A DNA stretch of 61,101 nucleotides from Octopus bimaculoides (GCF_001194135.2 NC_068985.1:105951234-106012334), one strand, 5' to 3'; counted from the stretch's first letter, positions 5,977 through 60,051 are shown. Numbers and translations are program-made. Notes: a model not told the origin generated them from the sequence alone.

Positions 5977-7576
5977 GCTGTATGATTACTGACAACTGAT
6001 GTGTAGCACACTGTGCACCTGTATAGGAAATGTCTATTTGATGAAAGGAGTGAACTAATGTGCAGTACAAACACTGATCAGTATAAAATCGTCTGTGCAA
6101 GCTGTTTCCTTGGATCAAGTGACAACCATTAAAATTTAAAGATTAAACTCAGTTGCAAGCATTTAGGCTGAACTGCTAATTTGAAGATACCTTCTTCCCT
6201 TCTGTCCACCAGCCTAGGAGGCCCTGTGAATAAATGTTCATGGACACATTGTTCCCTGATTAACCATCATTTTAACACCTACTGTTCCATACTTGCATAG
6301 GTTAGAATACACCTGGTATACACTTCTATTTAATTCTATAAATTGTTCATTTAAGACCAGTTTTTCTAAGACAATTTTATTTTTATTTATTAATATATTG
6401 AAGCCATATGTGGACTGCAACAAAAGTTCTTATAGAAATCTACAACATAGTTTGCCTCAAAACTATAATTACAGATAAAATAAGTAAAATTTAAAATTAT
6501 CTCAATTCTACATAAATGCCAACTTTCATGTGCATATTATTAGCCTTGAATGGATATGGGTAACTATTGTAAAATACTGTAATTTATCAATGTCTGAAGG
6601 AAATTACTAAGTAAAATAAATTCACATATACCCCATTGATTCATTTTAATATGCATTTTTCCATGTTTGCATGGGTCAGACGGAATTTGCAAGGGAAATT
6701 TTCAGCAAAATTTGTCACATATAGAGTAAAATTATATGTAATTTAAAAAATTGAAAATTTAAGTTGAAACTCCACAGCAGTTATTTCTTGATTTGAAAAC
6801 CCTTTACATTCAGAAATTGTCTTTCCCAAGTCCAGAACTCACTTTATAATTTTCATCTACATACTTAAAACATATTAGTAGAAAATTTTGTTAAAAAAAC
6901 ATCCGTTTTTCATAAAGTTATAAGGTCAGAAAACAACAGGGCACACACTTCTACAGTTATGCACTAAATGTATTTAGAGAAAGTGAGTACTCTTAGATGA
7001 ATAAAGAATACAAGGAAAGTAAGATGTAACAGGAGATAAATTTACACAAGTTGGGAATCAAATGTGTAAATATCATTTAGCAACTAACAGAAAACAGACC
7101 AGGTGATCGATCAGCTATTACTGCTAATGTAATATGATTGATGTCAATATTTTGTGTAAAAGAAAAAGTTACTGAATAGGTAAATCCAGATTGTTTCGTG
7201 TATTTTGGTGACAGTCTTAAAAATTTTGTTTGGTTTTTGTAATTGTGAAATTTTTTCGCCATGAACGGTTTGTGTTTTTAAACCGAATGTATTTTTTCTT
7301 ATGTTATATTTATTCCTGAATGATGTGTAAAGAAATTTTGATTTATTAAGTCTCTTAATGAATTCTTTATACTGAAATATATATTGAAGAGAAATATGTT
7401 CATTTGAATATATACGTTTTTGCGTCGTAACTCCTTTATTATTATTATTTATATATATATATAACTTTATAATAATTACAGTACTTTTATGTCATTAAAT
7501 GTAGCCAAAACTGGAGATAAATGACTAACACAACAAAAGACTTACAGAGCAAAATTTATTAACATGCCATGAAAAT

Positions 7577-7655
7577 TTATTTTTTCATGCCTTCTTGTGC
7601 CTTCAGTACACGGACCACAATCTTCTGTTCTTCAATAAGGAATGCTCGCACAATC
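7577..7655 (-). CDS. RPL34: RPL34 last coding exon (RIVRAFLIEEQKIVVRVLKAQEGMKK*)
   Basis: Poly-T+CAG acceptor, TAA stop, AATAAA 17 nt downstream. Confidence 0.97.
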
Positions 7656-10600
7656 CTGGTTAAAAAAAAAAAAAAAGTTTCATAGTAATACAAAAAAATA
7701 CACAGAAGAATGTGTAGAGTATAATCAATTGCTGATGATACTCCTGGATGACAGAGGTAAAAGTCAGGTAAACTATGAAAGATTCAAAAGATTTGGGATT
7801 GGTCACAGCAAAAATACAATGAAAATAAAACGTAATACGACAAGTCTCCTTTCTTCAACATTAGGTTAATTAAACTATTTTACAAAGTGAATTGTATTTT
7901 ATGCTAATTAAGCATAAGCTTTGATCTAAAAAGATATTCCAGCTATTATGACTAATTAAGATAGTAGAGATTTGACTGCTATTTCTAATAACTTAAATGA
8001 CCACATAGGGGCTCATTTGTGTTTGAATTTGATATTAATTGAAAAAGCACATCTGAATCTTAAGTTAGACAGCAACCCAGTGTTTTATCAGAAGTCTGAT
8101 AAATCAGCAATGTTATCATAGGATATGTTCCTGACCATAACATCTGACAAGAATTTGTATATAAAATTACAATGGAATTTTGATGCTTAATAATAAGTAT
8201 TTTAGAGGAATTTAAATGAAGGTTGATTGTTTGATTATTAAGCTATTCAGGACCAGAGGCCATCTTGGACAGGCTGGTATCACAAGGGCTACACTATCTA
8301 GTTAACTAATTCAGCATGAAAGGGAAAACTGTGATGTGAATGCAGCAAAAAAGTGTATCCATATATGGTTAACAATCATAAAAATTAAAAAAAAAGTTAC
8401 AAGTTACATTGAAAGTTTATACATTCTAGAATGTAGAAGACTATTTGAACAAGGATCCTCTTATAAGGATTCTAAACTTTGAAGTAATTATTTACTGTAA
8501 GTAGCCAAGTTTACCAACATAACATGATACCTTTTTAAACTTTTAGGTATCAACCAGCTTGAAATCAGCACTGGTTCTATGATTTAAAATTCAGAATTGT
8601 CATTTTAAACATCAACCTACTAAGTCTTATTTTAAAAATTAAATGAAACAGGCAGAATATTTCTTAGGTGATCAACACCATAATATCTAGAAGTTAACCA
8701 GAACAAACCATTGCAAAATGGGACATTGCCAAAGTACCAAAACCATCTCTCATTCAATTAGTTAAAAACTCAGTCAAAAGTCAGTGAAGCACACTAGAAT
8801 CAAAATAGTGAATCATAGCCCAGTGCTTAAGTCATCATATTTGACCAATTCAACGACACCAAACAAAAATTTCTTATAATCCCAGATTATATGCTTTCAG
8901 CTATTTTTATTTACAGGAAAGGAATACGATTCATAATTTAAATAAGGAAATTTGTGAACTTTGAATGTATAAGAGTATTGACGAGTGTAAAATAGTGTAA
9001 ACAACTAAAATAAAAGTATATGTAAATAATTTTTTTTTCTTAATATTTTATATGTAGTGGTCGAAGGAAACTCTGGCTTTTGTTAGGAGTGGTCCGCATA
9101 ACCATTCATAATACAGAGACTGGGAGCCTATTTCAGTGCAGAAGTGAATTGTCAGCACTTCACTTAGCCGCAAACACACCATATAGCTGCAATAGACTGC
9201 TGTATCACCAACAATGTGATTTCTCTAAGACATCAGCCGGTAACCTATCAAGTCCATTTACACATTTCTCAATACATACTGCTGTTATGACTTCCCTTCC
9301 TTCAAATGAACTCCGTATATCCTACTGGATTTTAAAGAAAAACAAATTTTAGCAGAGAATCTCAAATAATGTAAAGCTATTAAATTTATTACAATAAACT
9401 TTTACCAGTCTGCCATTTCACACAACATCAAAAAGAATCACAAGAAACTCCAATAAACTGTAGATGACCAAAGTTTGTAACACTTCATTCAACTAATCAT
9501 TTTTTTATATGAATACTTGATAAAAGACCAAAAATCTGAACCCATATACCAGCAGTTGGTAAATCTAAATACTGCTGAGTGATACATACAACACCTTTGT
9601 TTCTGACATTGATTCAATGAATTCTTTTTCCTTTATTAGTGTGAATCAATTCCCTACAGGATGAGCATCTGTTATATGACAACATTGGACATCTAGTATC
9701 TGATAAAAGCATTCACCAGTTTAAATTGGAAAATTAAGTCACCATTGGCCATACTATATCTACTATGGCAATACATAAACATTCTCTGGGCAACCTGCTG
9801 CACTGCCATTAACACTCATATTTAGGTTGATAGAAGGTCTACAGTAGACACATATAGCCATAACTTCAAATCTCATCCTGCCCACTGTCAGAGTGGTGTC
9901 ATTCAATAAGCTAAACCTGGTCAAAAGTCAGTGAAGCACTTTAGAATCAGAATCAGTCATAGCCCAGTGCTTAAGTCATCATATTTGACCACATAATTCA
10001 ATAACATCCAAATAATTTACATGTCCTTTCATTCTACAGTTTTAAATAAATGCTCTTAACATGACATACACTATTATTATTAAGCAAAGAAGAGACTGAA
10101 AGATTTTGGCTATATATGCAAAACTTCAAACTACTCAACTGATAGCATGCCAAAAGTTCCCAAACCCCAGATCTCTTTGGACATTTTATCTTCATAGTCT
10201 TATAAAAGATATTCACTGGGCAATCTCTGCAATGCTATCATTAGCACAACCATATATTTGGATTAACAGAAATACCACAGCTGCAGGTCACCAAGGCAGT
10301 CCTTGCAATAACCAGGGGTTGAAAACTCTATAGTTTCAGATAATAAAATGTCAATTGGTTTCAAAATCTGACTTAGCCTCTAAGCTGATAAATGCAATGA
10401 AGTTGTCTCAGATATAGGTTAGTTTGAAAGAATAAGCAAAGTGCAAACACAGACTGCCAAGCTATTTATTGATTCATTAGTTTCATTCATATTTTCTTTA
10501 GATGACTAAGACTATTATCTCAATCAAATTATCAAAACAAATTAGCTGTAGTGAAATTGAAAGAAACTTGTCAAAAATCAGTGAAGCACGCTAGAATCAG

Positions 10601-12064
10601 TTAATCATAGCCCAGTGCTTAAGTCATCATATTTGACCAAGTAATTCAACACCCAAATATTCTTCTACAACCCATGACTAATGGGTTTGTACATCATATT
10701 TGATATCCCTTTTGTGTACATCTAAACATATACAAACACACACACACATCCTGCAGCCTCTAATAGGTTAATTCTTGTCCTGTCTACTATTAGGCACTTA
10801 GCTATACAAATTAGATCAGATTACTTCAGGAAGTGGTCATAAAACATTAAAATTTCCTGCAATAAAGAATTCAATTCTGCAAGGAACCAGTTCAATGAAA
10901 TTTCATGGTACAGTTAGTGTTGTAATATAACTTGACCTTTTAGTTGTATCAGCCAAAATCATTAATACAATTTTCTGAGTACATGAATAACCCTTCAGCA
11001 TTCAGATTACTTTTTTCAAATGTAATGCTTATATATTCACAGTTCTGAATTAATCACACATTATCTTATATTTTTGAGAATTCAATGTGATTATTAATTT
11101 TAAGAATGACTCAGGTAAGGTGTGTGAGGTTGGATCTGGCCAATTTAAACATAAAACAACAAGAATATTTTGACCAGATATGGCCAGTTTAAATGCTAAA
11201 GGGTTAAAGCATACAGAAGGCAATTAATTCTCAGTTATCTGACCAATACGTTGTATATAATTGATTTTAAAGAGAGATAAAGCAAATTAAGCCAGCCCCT
11301 GAACAATTTGAACTTAATACTTCGAGGTAACAAAACTAAAGGCACTTCAGTTATTAAAAGTTAAGCCTGTTGTTTCTACTAATTACAACATATACAAGGA
11401 ATGATTAATTTATGTGAAGCTAGCTCTTCCGTTCCAGTTTCATATATCAAAAACTTTCAGAAACCATAAGCACCTAATTCAAAAGTATTTCACATAAAAT
11501 ATCAAATAGATACACAATAATAACATCAGCCCACCAATAATACTGTTTTAAGAAGATAGTCACAATTCAGTGCTTAATGCATTGTAATTGACAGATAAGT
11601 AGTATATTGAAATATTTATGTTCCCGATATTGGTACAGTGATTAATCCTTACTGCTGCGAAACCTAATACCCACAGAATGAGGACATAATACACTTAGCT
11701 ACAATGTACGATGGTATTCATGACCTCACATTGGTCTCTGAAGTGGCAAATGAAGACATAGCTGCAGGTCGCCAATGTAGTTTATGAATTAATCTGAGGT
11801 TAACATCTCAAGTGATACAATACTGACTGAATTGATTGATTGATTGGAAAGAATGAGCAGAAAAATTTAGATCCCCAAGCAATTTATAAATTCATTGGTT
11901 GAACAGGTCAGATTATCAAAATAAAATAGCTGTAGTAACAAATATTAAAAAACTTGTCAAACATCAGTGAAGCACGCTAGAATCAGACAATTAGTCATAG
12001 CCCAGTGCTTAAAATCATCATATTGGACAAGTAATAGCTAAATATATTTTTACAATAATAACTG

Positions 12065-12107
<43 letters not shown>

Positions 12108-15100
12108 AACATCTACTTTTCGATGCTTGCATGGGCCAAATGAGACTGTTAAGGTAGAATATTCATGGCTTGAGTCCTTCTCGATGCCAACCATTAGCCA
12201 TTTCCAAGCAAAGTAATAATCCCTCAATCTATCAACAAACAAACTCAGACATGTTTTTGGCAGGAACAAACATGGCACCGTTTATATAAAGTGAAGCTTT
12301 TGTTTATAACCAGTGCATAAATGTAAAAACAATGGGAAATAGGCACTCAGTAATGCACACTTGTGTGCGTATATATATATTATATATATTTATGAATATG
12401 CACACACATAGCCATGTTTATAACTGATCTGGGATAACACACTATGCTCAACTGTGAACCATGTTACACTGATCACAGACTGATTTGTGATAATACAGAT
12501 CAATAATCAATTGAAGATTCTGCTCGTATCATAAAAACATGTCCCAGTGATAACCCATGATATTCAGCTACCCAATGTTCACTGATTATTGCTTGTCTTT
12601 ACATGAATGTGTTACAAGGTTACTTATTTTTTTACATGGTTTTATGTAGCTGTACCCTTCGACATTGGACAGGTGGAAAGAAAAATACAAAGATACCTGA
12701 TCCTAACAAATGAAGTAGAAGAGTGTATTCTATTCACAAGAAATTGGAGAGGATCAAGAAAATATGACAGTGAAAAGCTTCACTGCTGAGGGCTGCAAGT
12801 TTGGTGTCAATGGACCTAACATTTATTCCAACATGGAGATGATTTATTTATCACTGTGCTAATTAGAACCAAACCACAGTGATAAACAAGTATAGGTGTG
12901 TGTGTGTTTGTGTACACACAAATATATGCATAATTTCAATGTCCCTTTTTCATGCTTATATACATTAGATGGAATTCCATCAAACGAATTTCTATGGCTG
13001 GAGAACTTCACAAAAAACTAGAAATGTAGACAACCACCTGTATGGTGGTAACACTCACTTTTAATCACAGAACCCTGTTCGCACTAATATTTATGGTTTT
13101 GTCCATTATTAACAACATTTTTCTTGAGTAGGTTTTCCCTTAAATATAATGTAATTAACAATCATACATGCGCAACATTATTTCTAGTACCAAGTGACAA
13201 CTTACATTAAAGAGTGTATTTCATTAGTAATCAACTAATCACTAATTAATGACATGAAATTTAGAGACTTAGGCAAGTTGGATCCTGTCTAACCATCCAG
13301 CTTACGCCAGCATGGAAGTGGACATAAAAACAATAACGACGACATCAAAACCATCTTTCATACACAACCATTCCACATCTGGTATAACATTGAATTAGTC
13401 AAATATAAAAATTCAGTCAGAGATCAATGAAGCTTGCTGTTTTCAGAAGATAGTCACAGTTCAGTGCTTAATTCATTGTAATTGACTGATCAGTAGTATA
13501 TTGAAATATTTATGTTCCCGATATTGGTATCTGACATATTGGAACACGTCAGATTATCAAAATAAAATAGCTGTAGTAACAAATATTTAAAAACTTGTCA
13601 AAAATCAGTGAAGCACACTAGAATCAGACAATTTGTCATAGCCCAGTGCTTAAATCATCATATTGGACAAGTAATAGCTAAATATATTTTTACAATACAA
13701 TAACTGAGAGTGTATTTCGTTAGTAATCAACTAATCAATAATTACTGACATGAAATTTACAGACTCAGGCAAGTTGGATCCTGTCTAACCATCCAGTTTA
13801 TGCCAGCACGGAAGTGGACATAAAAAAAATGACGATGACATCAAAACCATCTGTACTTCACAACACAACACAGAGACTACCATTCCACATCTGGTGTAAC
13901 ATTGAATTAGTCAAATATAAAAATTCAGTCAGAAATTAATGAACCTTGCTGTTTTCAGAAGATAGTCACAGTTCAGTGCTTAATTCATTGTAATTGACTG
14001 ATCAGTAGTATATTGAAATATTTATGTTCCCGATATTGGTAGTGATTAATCCTTACTGCTGTGAAACCTAATCCCCACAGAATGAGGACATAATACACTT
14101 AGCTACAATGTACAATGGTATTCATGACCTCACATTGGTCTCTGAAGTGGCAAATGAAGACATAGCTGCAGGTCACCAATGTAGTCCATGAATTAATCTG
14201 AGGTTAACATCTCAAGTGATACAATACTGACTTAATTGATTGATTGATTGGAAAGAATGAGCAGAAAAATTTAGATCCCCAAGCAATTTATAAATTCATT
14301 GGTTGAACACATGTCAGATTATCAAAATAAAATAGCTGTAGTAACAAATATTAAAAAACTTGTCAAACATCAGTGAAGCACGCTAGAATCAGGCAATTAG
14401 TCATAGCCCAGTGCTTAAAATCATCATATTGGACAAGTAATGGCTAAATATATTTTTACAATAATAACTGTATGTATATATATATATATATATAATTTTA
14501 ACATCTACTTTCCGATGCTTGCATGGGCCTAATGAGACTGTTAAGGTAGAATATTCATGGCTTGAGTCCTTCTCGATGCCAACCATTAGCCATTTCCAAG
14601 CAAGGTAATAATTCCTCAATCTATCAACTAACAAACTCAGACATGCTTTTGGGAGGAACAACAAAACCATCTTTACTTCACAACACAACACAAAGACAAC
14701 CATTCCACATCTGGTGTTACATTGAATTAGTCAAATATAAAAATTCAGTCAGAAATTAATGAACCTTGCTCTCACAGTTGAGTTAATTTTAATTGACTGG
14801 TTATCATATTTCCATAACTATTTAAACACAAACCACAGTGTAAACCTACTCAGTACATACTGACTGTCAACTGACCCTTTCTGCTGACTTATGGAACCTT
14901 TAAGATCAGGATAAAGAAACTGAAAACAACCACCAAGATCAATGTGTCACTGACTATTGAACTTGTAAAATACACTTGCATCTTACTTATTGTATCAAAT
15001 GCGAAAACATACCTGTTTCTAACACATTTGTGACACCTAGAACCTCCATATGCTCGGGATACCTTCTTGTGTCGTCGGGACATAGACATCCATTTAATGG

Positions 15101-18100
15101 GTCTGGCTGGAGTGATCTGAATTGAACAAATGAAACAAAAATCACCACAAATTTTTAGACATTAAAACATGCTCGTAAGTCCTGCCTTATAAAATTTTAA
15201 ATTGCTGGGTACAGCTATGTGTAGTTAAGAAGCTCGCTTTGCAACCATATGGCTTCGGGTTCGTCCGTCCCCAACCACTTAACCTGTTGACGGTTTGTTT
15301 ATGCCCCTTAACTTAGCAGTTCAGTAAAAGACCAATAAAATAGTACAAGACTTGGTATACAATTTTAACAGCCAGTGTTTCTGTGGCTGACATTTTCAAA
15401 AATGCTACTGACTGGATTTTGACAAAGATTTTATCCTTTTAGTCAGCATATTTCCATTGAAACACACTACATTTGTTTGAATTAAACTGGCCATATCCAA
15501 CCCAAACTAACTAGACCTAACCTCTCACACCTATTCTACAATGTCATTCTAAAAATAACAATCACATCATCAAAATCTTGAAGCTACAAGATAATGTATG
15601 ATTAATTCAAAACAAGGTGAATAAATTTAGCACTACATTTAACTGAGTAATAAGGAATGCTAAAGGATTAATTATGAAAATAACGAAGAGTTTGAATAAC
15701 TCATTAAGTGGATGTTTGGAATACAACTGTGTCAAAAGCAGTAAAAATGAGAAAGAAGAAATAGAAATTGAGATGAACCTCTTGTAGGCCTTTTTGACAC
15801 AAATTGAATAGAAGACAGATTTTTTGAAGAAATACTCTTCCCAATAAACCTATAAAAAATTTCTGAAATGCCCCAAAATATGTCAGATGTTTCAAGCATT
15901 ATAGTTGGTGTGGTACAAATGAAGATATTTTATCTTTTACTAGTCTCCAGCCATGTTGGGCAATGCTTTGAAGACATTTTAGTCAAATGAATCAACGCTG
16001 GGTTTTTTAAAGCCTTATTCTATCAGTCTCTTTTGCTGAACTTCTAAGTTACAGTGACGTAAACACATCAACACCAGTTGTCAAGCAGTGGTAAGACACA
16101 CACACACATATATCAATATATAACTGACTCCCATGCCAGTGGCACATAAAAAGCACCATTCAAGCATGGTTGATGCCGGTACCGCCTGACTGGCCCTCGT
16201 GCCGGTGGCATGTAAAAAGCACCTACTACACTCTTGGAGTGGTTGGCGTTAGGAAGGGCTTCCAGCTGTAGAAACCTTTTCAGATCAGACCACAGCCTTC
16301 TGGCTTGCCGGTCCTCAGTCAAACCGTCCAACCCATGCCAGCATGGAAAGCAGATATTAAACGATGATGATGATGATGAGCTTCTTTCATTTTGTCTACC
16401 AAATCCATTTACAAGGATTTGGTCAGCTTGCAGCTGTAGTAGAAAACACTTGTCCCATGTGTTATGCAGTGGGACTGAAACTGGACCATGTAGTTAGGAG
16501 TCCAGTATCAATCAAAAAATTTCCAGGACTATACATAATGTCACTTACAAGAATTTTTTAGATGTACTGCAGGATACTTTTAAAGATGCTTATAACATAC
16601 ATAGGAGTTCCAAAGTGATTAAGCTATAAAGAATGTTCAAAATTTAAACTATATTCCAATAAAACTACCTTAATTACATGATAGGGACAGTAGTAGTTAG
16701 TATCTAATTTACACAAGTCTTCTGCAAATGGTCAAGAAACAATCATCTAATGAAGTAGGCAACCTGAACTGTTTTGTATTAGTTTTCAATCTTATGGGAA
16801 AATGAAAGAGGCATTGTGTACAAACACTTTATCAGGAAAAATACGCGTCAACTTACTCCTCTCAAAGGTTCCTTGCAATCACCACATCGAGGTATGGTAC
16901 CAAGTTTTTTTACATAAAGATATACAAGTTTACCACCTGAAAAAAAAAAAAAAAGAAAGAAAAATATTATAAACAAGATATATAAACAATATAACCAAGA
17001 TGCTCACATACCAAATGCTGGAATGGTGAATAAATATTTCTACTGACAAAAATGTCTCTGAGTGGTTGACGTTAGGAAGGGCATCCAGCTGTAGAAACTC
17101 TGCCAAATTTAGATTGGAGCCTGGTGTTGCCATCCGGTTTCACCAGTCCTCAGTCAAGTCGTCCAACCCATGCTAGCATGGAAAGCGGACGTTAAACGAT
17201 GATGATGATGTAAACATTTTAGTAGGTGTGTCATCATCATTGTCTTATGTTCATATTCCATATTGGCATGGGTTGGACTATGGTATGTGTGTATCCTTCT
17301 GGATTATTCACCTCCATATTTTAAATATTGAAACTAGAACACAAGTAGCAATACTGAATTTGGTCATTTGTGAATCAAGGTCTCATCCTAATTGTAAATG
17401 TGGTGTTCCTTGAAGACAACCAAAACAGAACATTGGGTATAAGTGTAATAAAGTCAGTAGGGTATGATTCAAGGGAAACTTGGTTGCTATTTCTAGCTGC
17501 TCAAACATCCAAAAAGAGTTCTCATTGACTTGGTCTTGCTGATTATTTTCCTAAATCAAAACCTTGCCATATAAAGAAGCTTTAATACTTTGAAAGACCA
17601 TCTGCACTAGTAGTCAGATTTTTTTCTTTCTCTAACAGGTTCCAAAATCTCTAATAGACTATCAGCTCTTTCACTACAAACTAATATTTGATACAAAACA
17701 AATAACACACTTACCAGGGGTCTTGGAGCTGTTTTTGTTCACCATCACAGAAAATAAATGAAAATAAGTATTAATTTACAGCCATTTCACAAATATGAAC
17801 ATTTAACAAAATTATCTTTCAGTTGAGTTTGTTTAAAATGCAACACCAGAGATACCACCAACCCAACTCTACTCTTTTCTATGAGGCTATCATATAACCT
17901 GATATAAGTTTGTGTGGTAAAGAGGTTCACTATGCAACTGCACGGTTTTGGGTTCAGTCCCACAGTGTGGCAACTTGAACAAGTTTAAAACTCTTTAACT
18001 GCAGCATCATACTGACCAATACCTTGTAAGTGAATTTGGTAACCAGAAACTGCATTACACCCAACATGTACATTCTATGCTTAAAAAGAAAAAGGCTGAG

Positions 18101-29347: not shown

Positions 29348-30840
29348 GGTGATGATGTGTGTGTAATCATTTTCATAATTGTCATTTTAATGTTTACTTT
29401 TCCATTCTTGTGGGTCAGATAAAATTCTTTGGAGTAAATTTTCTTTGGCTGGATACCCTTCCTCTCACCAACCCTCATCTATTTTTTAGAAAGATATTTC
29501 TCTTTGTCCTTCAGACATGAACAGCAAAATGGCCAAAGTTGCAAACAAATTGCACTATTTGTATGACAGTGACTTACCTTTACAATGAGCATGTAATAAC
29601 AGGACATGTGCATGCACCTATATGTACATACACACACAGCACAGACATACATGCTGTGACATATTCACAGGTTCTGCTAGTTATTATTATTATTATCATT
29701 TTAAAAGCCACATGTCTTGTGAAATGCAACTTCCAAGGGTTTCTTTGTTGAAATTTTTTTGCCATTAATCAAGCTGTTAAAATAACGAAATGGTTAGTTA
29801 ACTGCATTCAAAGTAGTTAATGTTTGAATGAGCACGTGCATATAGAAATAGAAAAAGATAGTGAAAAACACAGGGGAGGTAATCAAATCCTCAGCAACCA
29901 TCACCAGTGTTTTACACGTATCAAAATTATGCAAATCAGACCAGAATGGTTTATGATGTATCTGGTGGTCCATCTTTAATTTCCATTAAAAGGAATTTTT
30001 TTAAATGCAGACATAAAGGAAAACTCTCTTTCCTGCCATTTACACAGTCATTAGAGGTTCTTAAGTTTTAAGAAACACAAGAACCTCTTGTGACTGAGAT
30101 GTAATTGACTATCCTCCTCCCTCAAAACTTTGTGAAAATTAGAAAGGATTATTATTATCATTATTATTATTCCTCCAAGGTCCTTTCAGGGTCAATAAAT
30201 TAAGTACCAGTTACGTCCTGGGGTTGGTCCAATTGACTGGTCCCTCCCCAAAAATTTTGGCAAGCTGTCAGAAACGTTAGCACGCCGGGTGAAATGCTTA
30301 GTGGTATTTCATCTGTCTTTACATTCTGAGTTCAAATTCCACCAAGGTTGACTTTGCCTTTCATCCTTTTGGGGTCAATAAATTAAGTACCAGTTGTGTT
30401 CTGGGGTTGATCAAATCGACTGCCCCCCCCCCTCCCCAAAAATTTCAGGCTTTATATCTAGAGTAGAAAAGGAATAAATTAAGTACTAATGAAACATTGA
30501 AGTCAATGTAATCAGTTAGTCCCCTCCCCCAAAATTTCAGGCTTTGTGCTTTTTGTAAAAGGATTATTATTATTATTATCATCATCATCATCATCGTCAT
30601 CATCATCATTATTTTAAGGCAGTGAGCTGACAGAGTCATTAGCATGATGGGCAAAATGCTTTGTGGCATTTCATCTGTCTTTACATTCTGATTTCAAATT
30701 CCGCCAAGGTTGACTTTGCCTTTCATCCTTTCAGGGTCAATAAAATAAGTACCAGTTGAACACTGAAGGTCGATATAATCGACTCATCCCTTCCCACAAA
30801 ATTGCTGCCCTCGTGGCAACATTTGAAACCATTATTATTA

Positions 30841-43112: not shown

Positions 43113-45088
43113 GTGTGTATATGTTTGTGTGTCTGTGTTTGTCCTCCCAGCATCGCTTGACAAACGATGCTGGTGTGTTTACGTCACCGTAACTTAGCAG
43201 TTCGGCAAAAGACACCGATAGAATAAGTACTAGGCTTCCAAAGAATAAGTCCTGGGGTCGATTTGCTTGACTAAAAGGCGGTGCTCCAGCATGGCCACAG
43301 TCAAATGACTGAAACAAGTAAAAGAGTAAAGAGTAAGATTATATTTAAAATAAGAAGCAGAAAAGCATGAATTTCATACATAGTTCATTATTTAATTTTG
43401 CTCAACAGTTGTTTCAGCAGCATAAATATCATTAATTTCATAATTATGCAACCAAGACATACAATTAATTTAAATTAAATGAATTTGAAAGCAATTTTTA
43501 CCTAAAGCATTATGTAGTACTCCTGATGATCTGTGTAAACATTGCTTTTAAATTAATTTAATTTACATAAATTATTTATGTATCTTAATTATGTAATTAT
43601 GGATTTAATGATGCTCATTGGACACTAAACTCCGCTTGCAAAGACTTGTTGAGGCAAGTGAAATCGAAATCGAACTAAATTCGAGCGAGATCGTCGCCAG
43701 TGCCGCTGGACTGGCTCCTCTACAGGTGGCACATAAAATACACCATTTTGAGCGTGGCTGTTGCCAGTACCGCCTAACTGGTCTTCATGCTGGTGGTACG
43801 TAAAAGCACCCACTACACTCTCCGAGTGGTTGGCGTTAGGAAGGGTATCCAGCTGTAGAAACTCTGCCAAATCAGATTGGAGCCTGGTGTAGCCATCTGG
43901 TTTCACCAGTCCTCAGTCAAATCGTCCAACCCATGCTAGCATGGAAAGCGGACGTTAAACGATGATGATGATGATGATATATGTGAAATTTATGCTTTTC
44001 TGCTTTTTATTCTAAATATGTTGCTGTAAAAGATTGTTTTAGCTGATTATATACATAGATAGAAGTTGATTCAACTTTGATTTACTGCAATGTAATAACA
44101 TTGGAGTTCAACGACATTATTAATTGGGCTCTTAATGACGATGAATTCATTTTTTTTTTCTTATGTATATACTCTCTTGGTACAGATATATTTTAAAGGA
44201 ATTATGAAGTTTAGAGAACCCAAATTTGAAATAGATGATTCCTTTGAAAGGGTTGAGTCAGGCAAAAAGGAAAATCACACCAAAGAGATGTGGGTGAACT
44301 CTGCAGTGCAATTCACAAAAGGAAAGAGTAAGAGCAGATTTCCAGGCAAGCAAAAATGATGACATTTTCAGAAAATTGACTGAGCCACCATGAAATGTGA
44401 CTTTCTTGTCAAAATCCAACAACAAATGATAATAAGATTAATAATAATAATAATCCTTTCTATTATAGGCACAAGGCCTGAAATTTTGGGGGAGGGGTAA
44501 GTCAATTACATCGAACCCAGTGCTTGACTGACACTTATTTCTTTGACTCCAAAGGGATGAAAGGCAAAGTCAACCTTGGTGGAATTTGAACTTAGAACAT
44601 AAAGATGGACAAAATGCTACTTAGCATTTTGCCCAGCATGCTAATGATTGTGCCAGTAACAACAAAATAACCATGGGTATAGAAAATGAAGAAAGTGAAG
44701 ATAGGGTCAAAAGCGTGACTCACATGGTTAGTGCTTGTGAAAGTCTTGTGCAGAAAGAGTACAAGCGTAGACATGACAAGTTAGCCTAAAACCTCCGCTG
44801 ACCACTATGTTGTAAGTATGAACATGAGGTTACAGGTGCTTGGTACCAACATACACCAGGAAAGGTAATAGACAAAAAGGGGAAGACAAAGATCCTCTGG
44901 GACTTTAACTACCAGACAGACAAGATATTAGAGCACCAAAGGCCGAATATAGTAACCTTTAGGAGGGACAAACAAGAGTAATACATGTGCTTGGTGTACC
45001 CTTATCAGATGGGTAGTCATGATGGGTAAATGGGCTTCGTATGTTTTACCCCAGTGTCACTTTGATGGCATGCTTTGCTCTCTCACTC

Positions 45089-58210: not shown

Positions 58211-60051
58211 TCAATGTTTTCTCATTATGATTGACCTATTATATTAATGTTCTCTCATTATTACTGCCAGCATCAGAGCAGGGAACGAACAAGGAAGAAG
58301 ACTTCATTTTTGGCTCATATGTACCTTCTGCTGCTGCATCATCAACCTCATTATCAACTACAAGGAGCGGAAGGTGAGCCACATTGATTGCTCTGCTCTC
58401 CCCCCTCTCCCCCCCTCTCTCTCTCTCATGACACAACTCTCATCATTATCATTACCACCATTGTCATTGTTATCAATAGCAGCAACATCACTTGAGCCCA
58501 TGATGTAGCCTCTACATCTTAAATTAACCAAACTAGAAATAGCAGCCACATTGGTTCAAACAATACTATCTTAAAAAATGAAACGAAAAGTCACACTGGA
58601 TTATGTAGTTCTTGTCATCATCATTATTACTACTTTCGTTATCACTTTCATCATTATCATCATCACCTTTATAAAACATCTTGTACTACAAGCCTTGCGT
58701 TTATGTAATGAAATGAAAGTATCTTTATAGATGAAGTCCAAAGGACCTTTAAGAGCCATTTCTTAGCTCTGGTTCTATGGTAATTGACGAATGAAACATG
58801 AATCTTCCCATAGACAAAACACCTATTTATTGCAGTTATTTTCCTTCAAATTCCCATTTTGGCACAGGTAGGATGGTTTGACAAGACTCAATGGATTGGA
58901 GGTCCACATCCTGCTCAAATGTTTCATTTTTTTTTTTTTTTGCATGGTTTCTAAGGTTGGACCTCCTTCCTAACACCAACCATTTTACAGAGTGTATCAG
59001 GTACGTTTTTTTTTTTTCTTGGTACCAGCACTATAGAGGTCACCTTGCCATCAGTAAGTCTAAAGAGCCCTCTCAGGCTCTTTATTGTCACAGCTTCAAT
59101 TGATTACCAATCACTTTTTGTACTGAGTGCTTTATGTGGCACCAGTACTATTGATGGCCATCTTTGTTGTTAAGGTGGTGAGCTGGCAGAATCATTAGAG
59201 TACTAGAAAAAATACCTTGCGGCATTTGTACCAGTACTTTAGGTTCTGAATTCAAATTCAGCTGGGGTCAACTTTGTCTTTGATCCCTCCAGGGTAAGTA
59301 AAATACTAGTTAGTAACTGGGATCAATGTAATCAGCTATCTACCCCACACTCCAACAAGACCCAAATTTTAGGCCTTGTGCCTATGTTAGAAGCAAGTAT
59401 TGTTTATGTTGTTGTTACATTTCCAATTTTCTTTGTCTAATTGATAGATTGCTTGATAAAGGTGAAAGTAAATCTTCCCTGTTGTCAGATAATTCATCCA
59501 AACGAAGAGGGTCCTTTCTGAAGACATCTCTGGATAATGATGATGATGATGATGATGATGACGATGATGATACCTTTGACTGGTTAATGGGAATAAGTAA
59601 AGAAAAGAGCTCAATAAAATCTTCCACATCTCACAAAACAAAGAAGACAACAAAACCAAAAGTAGAAGAAAAGAAGAGTAAAGAGATTGTTTTGGATGAT
59701 GACGATGATGATGACTGGTTAGGAATCAAGAAGGCCACAACTGATACTGAATTAAATGAATCATTCAAAACTGAGATCTCTCACCCAGCTAAACCAAGTT
59801 TGACTCTTAAAGATGTTCTTCCACCTAAAACAGAAACCCCTGGGAAAGTTGAAAAATCTAAGTCTGACGAAAGTTTTGAATTTAATGTCACTCCAAAAAC
59901 AAGTGCCGTCCGAAGAAAATCTAGTGTTGTAACTAAATCAGAACCAACAATTCAAACAAGTGGGGGCCTGGAAAAATCAAGTGCCTTATCAAAATCTGAG
60001 CCCTTTTTTTCTCAACATAATACAGTCCAAGAAAAACCTGAGGAAATAACG
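51953..60051 (+). CDS. FBF1: Fas-binding factor 1 homolog (ciliary transition-fibre/distal appendage protein), 5' partial; continues beyond the window
   Basis: Frame-consistent exons 51938/51953-51962, 52484-52509, 53449-53477, 53931-54030, 55229-55433, 55723-55947, 57172-57366, 58271-58373, 59448-60051. Motifs match recalled FBF1 N-terminal blocks: EDFYANMA...DLDDMDADLFG (human DLDGMDADILG), DDIFDELGLNDSP (DDIMATLGFGDSP), VDDLLKG, EEDFIFGSYVPS (DEDFTFGAYQPT), DDWLGIK. The start codon is uncertain. Confidence 0.82.
53931..54030 (+). CDS. FBF1: FBF1 exon (SEDFYANMAAVAEEESDLSLSDVDADQLAKSLA)
   Basis: Polypyrimidine tract with TAGCAG acceptor; GTAAGT donor. Confidence 0.88.
55229..55433 (+). CDS. 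FBF1: FBF1 exon (DLDDMDADLFGGRKK...)
   Basis: tattgtag acceptor; the donor T|GTAAAT is weak but gives the phase needed by the next exon. Confidence 0.82.
55723..55947 (+). CDS. FBF1: FBF1 exon (NDNIDLTGLLSDDDS..., Thr/Pro-rich)
   Basis: ttatttccag acceptor, G|GTAAAG donor, 225 nt. Confidence 0.78.
56150..56340 (-). mobile_element. tRNA-derived SINE (family 1, 5' part)
   Basis: Reverse-complement similarity to family 1. Confidence 0.7.
56460..56825 (+). mobile_element. RTE-clade LINE fragment (internally deleted; APE endonuclease piece joined to RT piece)
   Basis: KVRRKSDRVITVVL...RVICGYG (APE) followed by KVGVHQGSVLSPLLFAIV...DADDLVLM (RT, YADD-like). Confidence 0.75.
57172..57366 (+). CDS. 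FBF1: FBF1 exon (KAVTFNNEDDIFDELGLNDSP...VDDLLK)
   Basis: Poly-T+TAG acceptor, GTAAAC donor. Confidence 0.85.
57820..58130 (-). mobile_element. Family 2 retroposon
   Basis: Close reverse complement of 43680-43978. Confidence 0.85.
58271..58373 (+). CDS. FBF1: FBF1 exon (EEDFIFGSYVPSAAASS)
   Basis: actgccag acceptor, AG|GTGAGC donor. Confidence 0.85.
59448..60051 (+). CDS. FBF1: FBF1 large exon (poly-Asp runs, DWLMG/DWLG motifs)
   Basis: 604-nt open exon, gatag acceptor, ACG|GTAAAT donor. Confidence 0.85.

Follow-up and report, generated by a model that had tools for sequence, protein, structure and literature searches.

Whether one intron of an animal gene can carry several working copies of the same small nucleolar RNA (snoRNA) gene is the question raised by the third intron of RPL34 in a 61,101-nt stretch of DNA from Octopus bimaculoides (NC_068985.1:105951234-106012334), which we analysed at its full length and refer to as the window. 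A preliminary description, made from the sequence, had proposed that this intron holds six box C/D snoRNA units of a single family on the RPL34 sense strand. We find that the cluster is real and well formed, and that it is of a type already known from rice and fruit flies. With a probability of roughly 0.7, we read the locus as an intronic cluster of paralogous SNORD88/snR76 (HBII-180) box C/D snoRNA genes.

Six intact box C/D units

Between 8773 and 14434, the minus strand (the sense strand of RPL34) carries six intact box C/D snoRNA units, 68-73 nt long from stem to stem (Table 1). The 12-mer AAGCACTGGGCT has exactly six matches, all on the minus strand (8817, 9961, 10609, 11999, 13640 and 14405), compared with 0.17 expected by chance, and none of 100 shuffles gave seven or more. 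A seventh guide-like site at 44514, with one mismatch (11/12), has no boxes and was set aside as a chance match.

Read from 5' to 3', each unit begins with the stem half GUC(A/C)AA, a U and the C box AUGAUGA, followed after 2-4 nt by the guide AAGCACUGGGCU and a D' box, AUGA. A variable loop of 8-15 nt then leads to a C'-like CUGAUUC, UA and two variable bases, and the unit closes with GUGCUUCA, the D box CUGA, two further bases and the 3' stem half UUUGAC. Identical across all six units are UAUGAUGA, UUAAGCACUGGGCUAUGA, UGAUUCUA, GUGCUUCACUGA and UUUGAC, and every unit has the C box AUGAUGA near its 5' end and the D box CUGA near its 3' end. The loop between D' and C', by contrast with these invariant blocks, differs among units 1, 2, 3, 4/6 and 5.

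We built a covariance model from the six units and ran it across the whole window with filters off. The intact units scored 96-109 bits; three further matches on the minus strand scored 48.9, 43.9 and 23.2 bits. Nothing else in the window exceeded 14 bits, and the model found no copies of the unit outside the intron. A naive C/D scan of the whole window likewise returned only these units and GATGAT microsatellites. The 12-mer, the boxes, the stems and the matches to SNORD88 (below) together confirm the six same-family units that had been placed on the RPL34 sense strand. The earlier inventory holds for the intact copies but missed three decayed ones, which we call p1, p2 and p3 (Table 1).

Terminal stems of 6-9 bp close the units, all of which fold closed with z values of -1.7 to -3.3. 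Across the unit alignment, 90.7% of the stem cells are paired, compared with 17-52% after shifting the 3' partner by 1-3 columns, and columns 4/79 alternate between G-C or G-U and U-A. This covariation, coming from six related sequences, is suggestive and not proof. In units 4-6 a C.U mismatch (columns 8/75) is accompanied by an added outer helix, CUUGUC/GACAAG, and the most favourable fold energies, -21.4 to -22.6 kcal/mol, belong to these units.

Family and predicted rRNA target

SNORD88 (RF00604) is the sole snoRNA family in Rfam that all six units matched at E-value thresholds, with scores of 33.3, 25.4, 24.8, 24.4, 23.0 and 22.5 bits. The scores are low because the units are about 20 nt shorter than the model, carry the D box directly after GUGCUUCA and hold UUUGAC in the terminal stem. 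An Rfam search had been put forward as a check on the family assignment; it returned the expected family for every unit, but at 22.5-33.3 bits and so under the gathering threshold of 46 bits. On these sub-gathering scores, the units are to be called SNORD88-like functional equivalents and not certified members of the curated family. Other Rfam matches at the E-value level were rejected: they comprised matches of AT/GT microsatellites to 'miRNA' (microRNA) families and a match to snoR79 at 58586-58670 that consists of low-complexity GAUGAU repeats.

The guide carries the assignment further. AAGCACUGGGCU-AUGA aligns column for column on the SNORD88 consensus AGCACUGGGCU-CUGA, so the guide stands in the identical register to the D' box and the D'+5 rule therefore picks the same nucleotide as in SNORD88, which bears out the earlier proposal of a SNORD88/snR76 guide. 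We take the target to be the universal large-subunit (LSU) rRNA motif GCCCAGUGCU, with its third C opposite guide position 5 upstream of D'. In the proposed mechanism, the 10-bp D' guide of an intact copy, AGCACUGGGC, would bring fibrillarin to this LSU motif, where the enzyme would 2'-O-methylate the third C; that nucleotide would correspond to human 28S Cm3680 and yeast 25S Cm2197. Both sites had been named correctly: human 28S Cm3701 (3680) is guided by SNORD88/88A/B/C (PMC5597630) and yeast 25S Cm2197 by snR76 (PMC5699541). In Neurospora the equivalent of snR76 and HBII-180 is CD12, an intron-encoded snoRNA with a 10-bp D' guide (PMC2780460).

The conserved 3' part of the units has further pairing potential. 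An invariant GUGCUU in units 1-6 is complementary to the guide's own AAGCAC, and the predicted fold pairs the two, with GUGCUU lying before the D box. In human 28S rRNA, a partner that GUGCUUCA could also pair with, over 9 bp including one G.U, is AAUGAAGCGCG, located 37 nt downstream from the Cm site, and GUGCUUCA plus UUUGAC would be complementary to AAUGAAGCGC plus GUCAAA, 13-40 nt downstream of that site. We do not propose GUGCUUCA as a second methylation guide, because the matching human position falls between Am3703 and Gm3723, an interval in which no human methylation is listed (PMC5597630). GUGCUU/GUGCUUCA and UUUGAC may serve for accessory rRNA pairing or form a self-masking helix.

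Copy number of the motif

A motif that recurs within one intron might belong to a dispersed transposon fragment or a snoRNA retroposon, and the intron does hold high-copy repeats, such as that at 8917-9300. We consider this origin extremely improbable for the units. Their DNA depth is 1.3-3.6x single-copy in four DNA runs from the same organism, with organism B alike, whereas the neighbouring repeat stands at 100-400x; even the modest excess over single-copy depth arises because k-mers are shared among the intron's own copies. The units also have no A-tail in their flanks, and all copies sit on the host strand within one intron, with none elsewhere in the 61 kb. The test of the motif as a transposon fragment, which had been suggested earlier, thus came out in favour of a low-copy motif and a cluster that is not a dispersed repeat.

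Two repeats are recorded here as observations in their own right. That at 8917-9300, between units 1 and 2, is very high-copy (100-400x single-copy depth in the DNA runs), and its word depth reaches about 46000 in one organism B run. An element shared by 30512-30609 (minus strand) and 44356-44640, reading ...CCTTT..AAAGCACAAGGCCTGAAATTTTGGGGGAGGGG... and adjoining (ATT/GAT)n tracts, is probably a SINE-like (short interspersed element) repeat; it contains the chance match at 44514.

Conservation of the unit cores

Between the old lineages (units 1, 2 and 3, and the group of units 4/5/6) the cores are 82-90% identical, whereas the flanks of +-100 nt are only 23-50% identical. Random pairs from the same intron have an identity of 0.32 +- 0.09. 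Three places take up the substitutions in the cores and every indel: the D'-C' loop, the pair of bases that precedes GUGCUUCA, and stem-adjacent positions. Such a pattern is expected of a working C/D snoRNA, and neither gene conversion nor mere recency would yield it. Conserved cores in diverged flanks point to selection on the cores. The preliminary description had seen the cores as conserved islands, and boxes and guide are indeed more conserved than the flanks. Its picture of diverged spacers and, for copies 1-3, diverged flanks needs amendment, however. Residual homology extends over about 30 nt adjoining units 1-3; the downstream flank of unit 3 is about 55% (up to 56%) identical to those of units 4-6; and units 4-6 themselves sit in young segmental duplications.

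The same data bear on the alternative that the cores are alike through recent duplication or gene conversion, the six units being what is left of a single earlier snoRNA gene. The copies lie near one another, tandem arrays undergo conversion, and units 4-6 are clearly recent. We nevertheless hold this account to be very unlikely. Identity between the flanks of units 1-3 is at the random level, which makes their duplications old. Conversion would homogenize the D'-C' loop too, yet the loop varies in both sequence and length between two invariant blocks. Sister copies that are free of constraint provide an internal neutral control: p1-p3 lost precisely the boxes and the guide. Finally, the unit 2 orthologue is more conserved than its flanks: in relatives B, C and D, which are about 5-6% diverged in the intron, unit 2 has one change (9940, a variable position) in about 70 nt, compared with 13 over 236 nt and 30 over 560 nt of flank. 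For the selection that we favour, the conservation of unit 2 in these relatives is a weak indication in the expected direction and is not decisive on its own.

Growth and decay of the array

The three decayed copies differ from the intact units at the functional elements. Their guide has changed from GGGC to GAAC or GAAU, and the D box reads UUGA or UUAA or is lost. Each lies about 110-365 nt downstream, in the RNA sense, of an intact unit and within the same duplication blocks. The block holding p1 and unit 4 (11465-12269) is 94-98% identical to that holding p3 and unit 6 (13871-14661) across most of about 800 bp, and more diverged, at about 68%, at the p1/p3 end (11465-11635). Unit 5 belongs to a related, shorter duplication block. 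The cores of units 4, 5 and 6 are mutually 93-99% identical, and unit 6, at 99% identity to unit 4, is therefore a young duplicate. From the duplication blocks and the decayed copies it follows that successive local duplications enlarged the array and that some of its members are already gone. On the sequence comparisons made here, the six intact and three decayed copies are shown to have arisen by repeated tandem and segmental duplication, in a birth-and-death pattern.

In relatives B and D, contigs keep to the window sequence as far as 10586, a point in the middle of unit 3, where they pass into the unrelated sequence TGCCAAGTACAACAATAC...; other D contigs run on to 10607. This break points to a graph branch, an insertion allele or an additional partial copy, and copy content may differ among the relatives.

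This history also bears on how many of the copies work. Only a subset might be productive (units 1-3 plus a single member of the 4-6 group, for example), with the rest as silent young duplicates heading for the decay seen in p1-p3; the locus would then be a birth-and-death array and not a six-fold expressed cluster. Units 4-6 are alike in their cores, lie in nearly identical blocks and have the C.U mismatch in the inner stem, and p1-p3 are demonstrably dead. Reviews put the unexpressed share of annotated snoRNA copies at a quarter to two-thirds (PMC11028025). Against this stands the retention of every box and the guide in all six units, together with the outer CUUGUC/GACAAG stem, which compensates for the mismatch in units 4-6 and accompanies the best fold energies. 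We regard a productive subset as possible, though it is not the reading we prefer.

A single host intron

A tblastn search with human RPL34 identifies four minus-strand coding exons: about 19114-19058, about 16937-16854, 15116-15013 and 7655-7580. The sequences across the two ends of the last intron are cag|AUCACU...AACAG|guaugu and ...uuuaaccag|GAUUGUG, and the junction 7654|15012 (cut +1) is crossed by 223-426 reads per run in three raw-read RNA sequencing (RNA-seq) runs; it is also present in RNA contigs from older runs. With reads re-laid on sub-stretches free of microsatellites, we found no internal junction of at least three reads in 13150-15300. In 7480-10715 the only extra junction was a cryptic acceptor at 9324, with 3 reads in one run (X36) as compared with 406 at the main junction (0.7%). 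This acceptor adjoins the edge of a high-copy repeat, and its use would put a premature stop context into RPL34. Given a single dominant junction and no real internal exon, the six intact and three decayed units share one intron of the mature mRNA pathway. There are no exons between the snoRNA genes; isoforms that are sensitive to nonsense-mediated decay or are not polyadenylated could escape poly(A) data. The earlier placement of all six units in one RPL34 intron is upheld, as poly(A) RNA has no real exon inside it.

Other RNA joints, which link (TA)n/(CA)n microsatellites at 10748, 12063, 12913 and 14469, were rejected as artefacts. The (TA)n tracts at 12063-12103 and 14469-14494 lie 35 nt upstream, in the RNA sense, of units 4 and 6; they draw thousands of mis-laid RNA reads and so give false junctions, and as RNA they would form (UA)n hairpins. 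RNA-DNA differences in 7300-15300, from the raw reads of runs X36-X38, are most frequent for A>G (21-23 places) and T>C (12-15), which exceed all other types. A-to-I editing or polymorphism might account for this excess; microsatellites hold many of these sites.

Table 1. Positions of the snoRNA units, decayed copies and host features in the window
Feature	Position	Strand	Details
Unit 1, intact SNORD88-like	8773..8845	-	Rfam SNORD88 25.4 bits; own model 98.1 bits; 8-bp terminal stem fold
Unit 2, intact SNORD88-like	9920..9989	-	Rfam SNORD88 33.3 bits, E 1.6e-4; one change in relatives
Unit 3, intact SNORD88-like	10570..10637	-	Rfam 23.0 bits; own model 95.9 bits
Unit 4, boxes and guide intact	11956..12028	-	C.U mismatch in stem, offset by outer CUUGUC/GACAAG stem
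Unit 5, boxes and guide intact	13597..13668	-	Own model 108.7 bits
Unit 6, boxes and guide intact	14362..14434	-	99% identity to unit 4
Decayed copy p1	11524..11592	-	C box ACAAUGC, guide ..CUGAAUU, no D box; repeat search (family D3), alignment, 23.2 bits
Decayed copy p2	13416..13486	-	C box ACAAUGA, guide GGGC>GAAC, D' GUGA, D box UUGA; 48.9 bits
Decayed copy p3	13928..13998	-	Like p2, D box UUAA; 43.9 bits
Segmental duplication block, p1 and unit 4	11465..12269		Repeat families D1, D2, D4, D7
RPL34 intron 3, host of the cluster	7656..15012	-	7357 nt, GT..AG; junction reads and RNA contigs
RPL34 exon 3 (..SRAYGGSRCHKCVRNR)	15013..15116	-	tblastn, sequence; depth ~300
RPL34 last exon (IVRAFLIEEQKIVVRVLKAQEGMKK)	7549..7655	-	Stop 7580-7578; 3' untranslated region to ~7549, where read ends pile up
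Rarely used cryptic 3' acceptor (uuuuucuuuaaaauccag|UAGG), spliced to exon 3	9324..9326	-	3 reads, X36

Proposed release of the units from the intron

The 3' ends of the units lie between 1117 and 6706 nt upstream of the 3' splice site, unit 1 being the nearest, and the spacers measure 0.6-1.6 kb. Because even the nearest unit is 1117 nt from the splice site, assembly of the small nucleolar ribonucleoprotein (snoRNP) probably depends on the stem and is not coupled to splicing. We propose that the units would be co-transcribed in the RPL34 pre-mRNA, with each snoRNP assembling on its own kink-turn and 6-9-bp terminal stem, independently of the distance to the splice site. The intron would then be excised and debranched, and exonucleases would trim it from both ends. 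To free the internal units, every unprotected spacer of 0.6-1.6 kb would have to be cut endonucleolytically one or more times, after which exonucleases would trim to each snoRNP and leave RNAs of about 70 nt. Animals are not known to have an Rnt1-like snoRNA pathway, and no such endonucleolytic step has been characterized in them.

Two other routes had been offered in the preliminary description, and neither gains from the present data. Internal re-splicing finds no counterpart in the RPL34 intron, which has no recursive-splice motif of the form AG|GT(A/G)AG(T) or AGGTATG. Fused RNAs with snoRNA ends have no support in the intron depth. This second route amounts to a distinct reading of the locus, in which pairs of snoRNPs shield the intron and the main products are long noncoding RNAs that have snoRNAs at both termini (sno-lncRNAs), spanning units 6 to 1 or sub-intervals. 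Its precondition, at least two snoRNA genes in one intron, is present here (PMC5054931, PMC11028025). The depth in four intron-rich RNA runs speaks weakly against it, being flat, at about 21-24 in the tail of the intron (7696-8775) and about 15-21 between units (9316-10600), although contig depth is a coarse measure. We think it unlikely that sno-lncRNAs are the main output. Exon 4 has a depth of about 2000 in the same runs, and other RNA runs are equally low over the intron. Runs X9, X12 and X13 show, over 7696-10632, a contig depth of about 21-24 toward the 3' end of the intron and about 15-18 further 5', the reverse of a co-transcriptional sawtooth.

Several observations weigh against the reading of the locus as a cluster of SNORD88/snR76 genes. 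No Rfam match anywhere in the window reaches its gathering threshold (46 bits for SNORD88), and the D-box region of the SNORD88 model aligns uncleanly to the units. The D' box is AUGA and not CUGA, the C' box (UGAUUC) is degenerate, and units 4-6 carry the stem mismatch. Since units 4-6 are young duplicates (cores 93-99% identical), their conservation says little. Endonucleolytic release is purely inferred, and we found no conserved hairpin, such as an RNase III-like site, common to all spacers; there are only the (TA)n palindromes upstream of units 4 and 6. Standard RNA-seq has a flat depth over the units, at the level of pre-mRNA, but such libraries do not retain RNAs of 60-100 nt, the size at which box C/D snoRNAs accumulate in complex with fibrillarin, NOP56, NOP58 and SNU13. 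RNA-seq contigs gave no mature-snoRNA signal: where they cover units, they continue into flanking sequence at the depth of the intron.

A more far-reaching form of the preferred reading joins its separate parts. All six copies would be expressed from the 7.4-kb animal intron by a route that is independent of splicing position and dependent on an endonuclease, as a lineage-specific dosage adaptation serving methylation of this LSU site, with GUGCUUCA as an accessory element and not a second guide; GUGCUUCA would pair within the snoRNA or with rRNA. We offer this combination tentatively, as less likely than not.

Discussion

The locus overturns no rule. The preliminary description had treated one snoRNA per intron as a rule whose breach would be notable; it is a vertebrate-centred tendency with known exceptions. 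The literature gives one snoRNA per intron as the predominant arrangement in animals and sets 'intronic snoRNA clusters' apart as their own class (PMC11028025), and the exceptions include chicken, in which two introns have two identical snoRNA copies each (PMC2770669). Novelty had accordingly been overstated, as introns with several snoRNAs have been described in rice, Drosophila, Chlamydomonas and chicken; clusters of this kind are reported for rice and Drosophila melanogaster (PMC2780460). For some human introns with two snoRNAs, stable long RNAs with snoRNA ends are a described fate (PMC5054931). We found no study of snoRNA gene organization in cephalopods or molluscs in the literature searched. 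Going by their titles, Liang 2002, Huang 2004/2005 and Chen 2008 deal with intronic snoRNA gene clusters, which are described as extensive in Chlamydomonas.

What the locus offers is a natural experiment in the birth and death of snoRNA genes, with at least three copy ages in one intron: old lineages with randomized flanks, young duplicates of 94-99% identity and dead copies that display neutral decay. If the organism is a cephalopod, the locus carries an organization described in plants, algae and flies into a lineage in which snoRNAs have hardly been studied. The locus is also a tractable substrate for studying how internal members of a cluster are released in animals, as the copies can be distinguished by their D'-C' loops.

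Comparison with known systems places the octopus cluster closest to SNORD88A/B/C, snR76 and CD12 in its guide and to the clusters of rice, Drosophila and Chlamydomonas in its organization. With the former it shares the identical D' guide AGCACUGGGCU in the same register to the D' box, a 10-bp duplex as in Neurospora CD12, the same conserved target site and an intronic location. The SNORD88 consensus also has aGUGC downstream of C' and a UUUGAC(A) element, both of which are present in the octopus units. However, the SNORD88 model has 91 positions whereas the octopus units have 68-73 nt; the D' box is CUGA in SNORD88 and AUGA in octopus, whose scores stay below the gathering cut-off; and the octopus D box directly follows GUGCUUCA, with UUUGAC as the 3' half of the terminal stem and not, as in SNORD88, upstream of the D box. 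Human SNORD88 paralogues lie in separate introns of C19orf48, and the host of the SNORD88-like units in octopus is RPL34.

As in rice, Drosophila and Chlamydomonas, several sense snoRNA genes share one host intron, often as isoforms from tandem duplication; the octopus cluster differs in its lineage, its long spacers of 0.6-1.6 kb, its 7.4-kb intron, its restriction to a single family and its interleaved decayed copies. The chicken introns resemble it in having duplicated copies of the same snoRNA in an animal intron, but they have two identical copies, whereas octopus has six plus three, of different ages. Introns that yield sno-lncRNAs (the human 15q11-13 SNORD116 region and SLERT) likewise hold at least two snoRNAs each, and the octopus intron differs from them in giving no sign, at the coarse resolution of contig depth, that RNA accumulates between its units.

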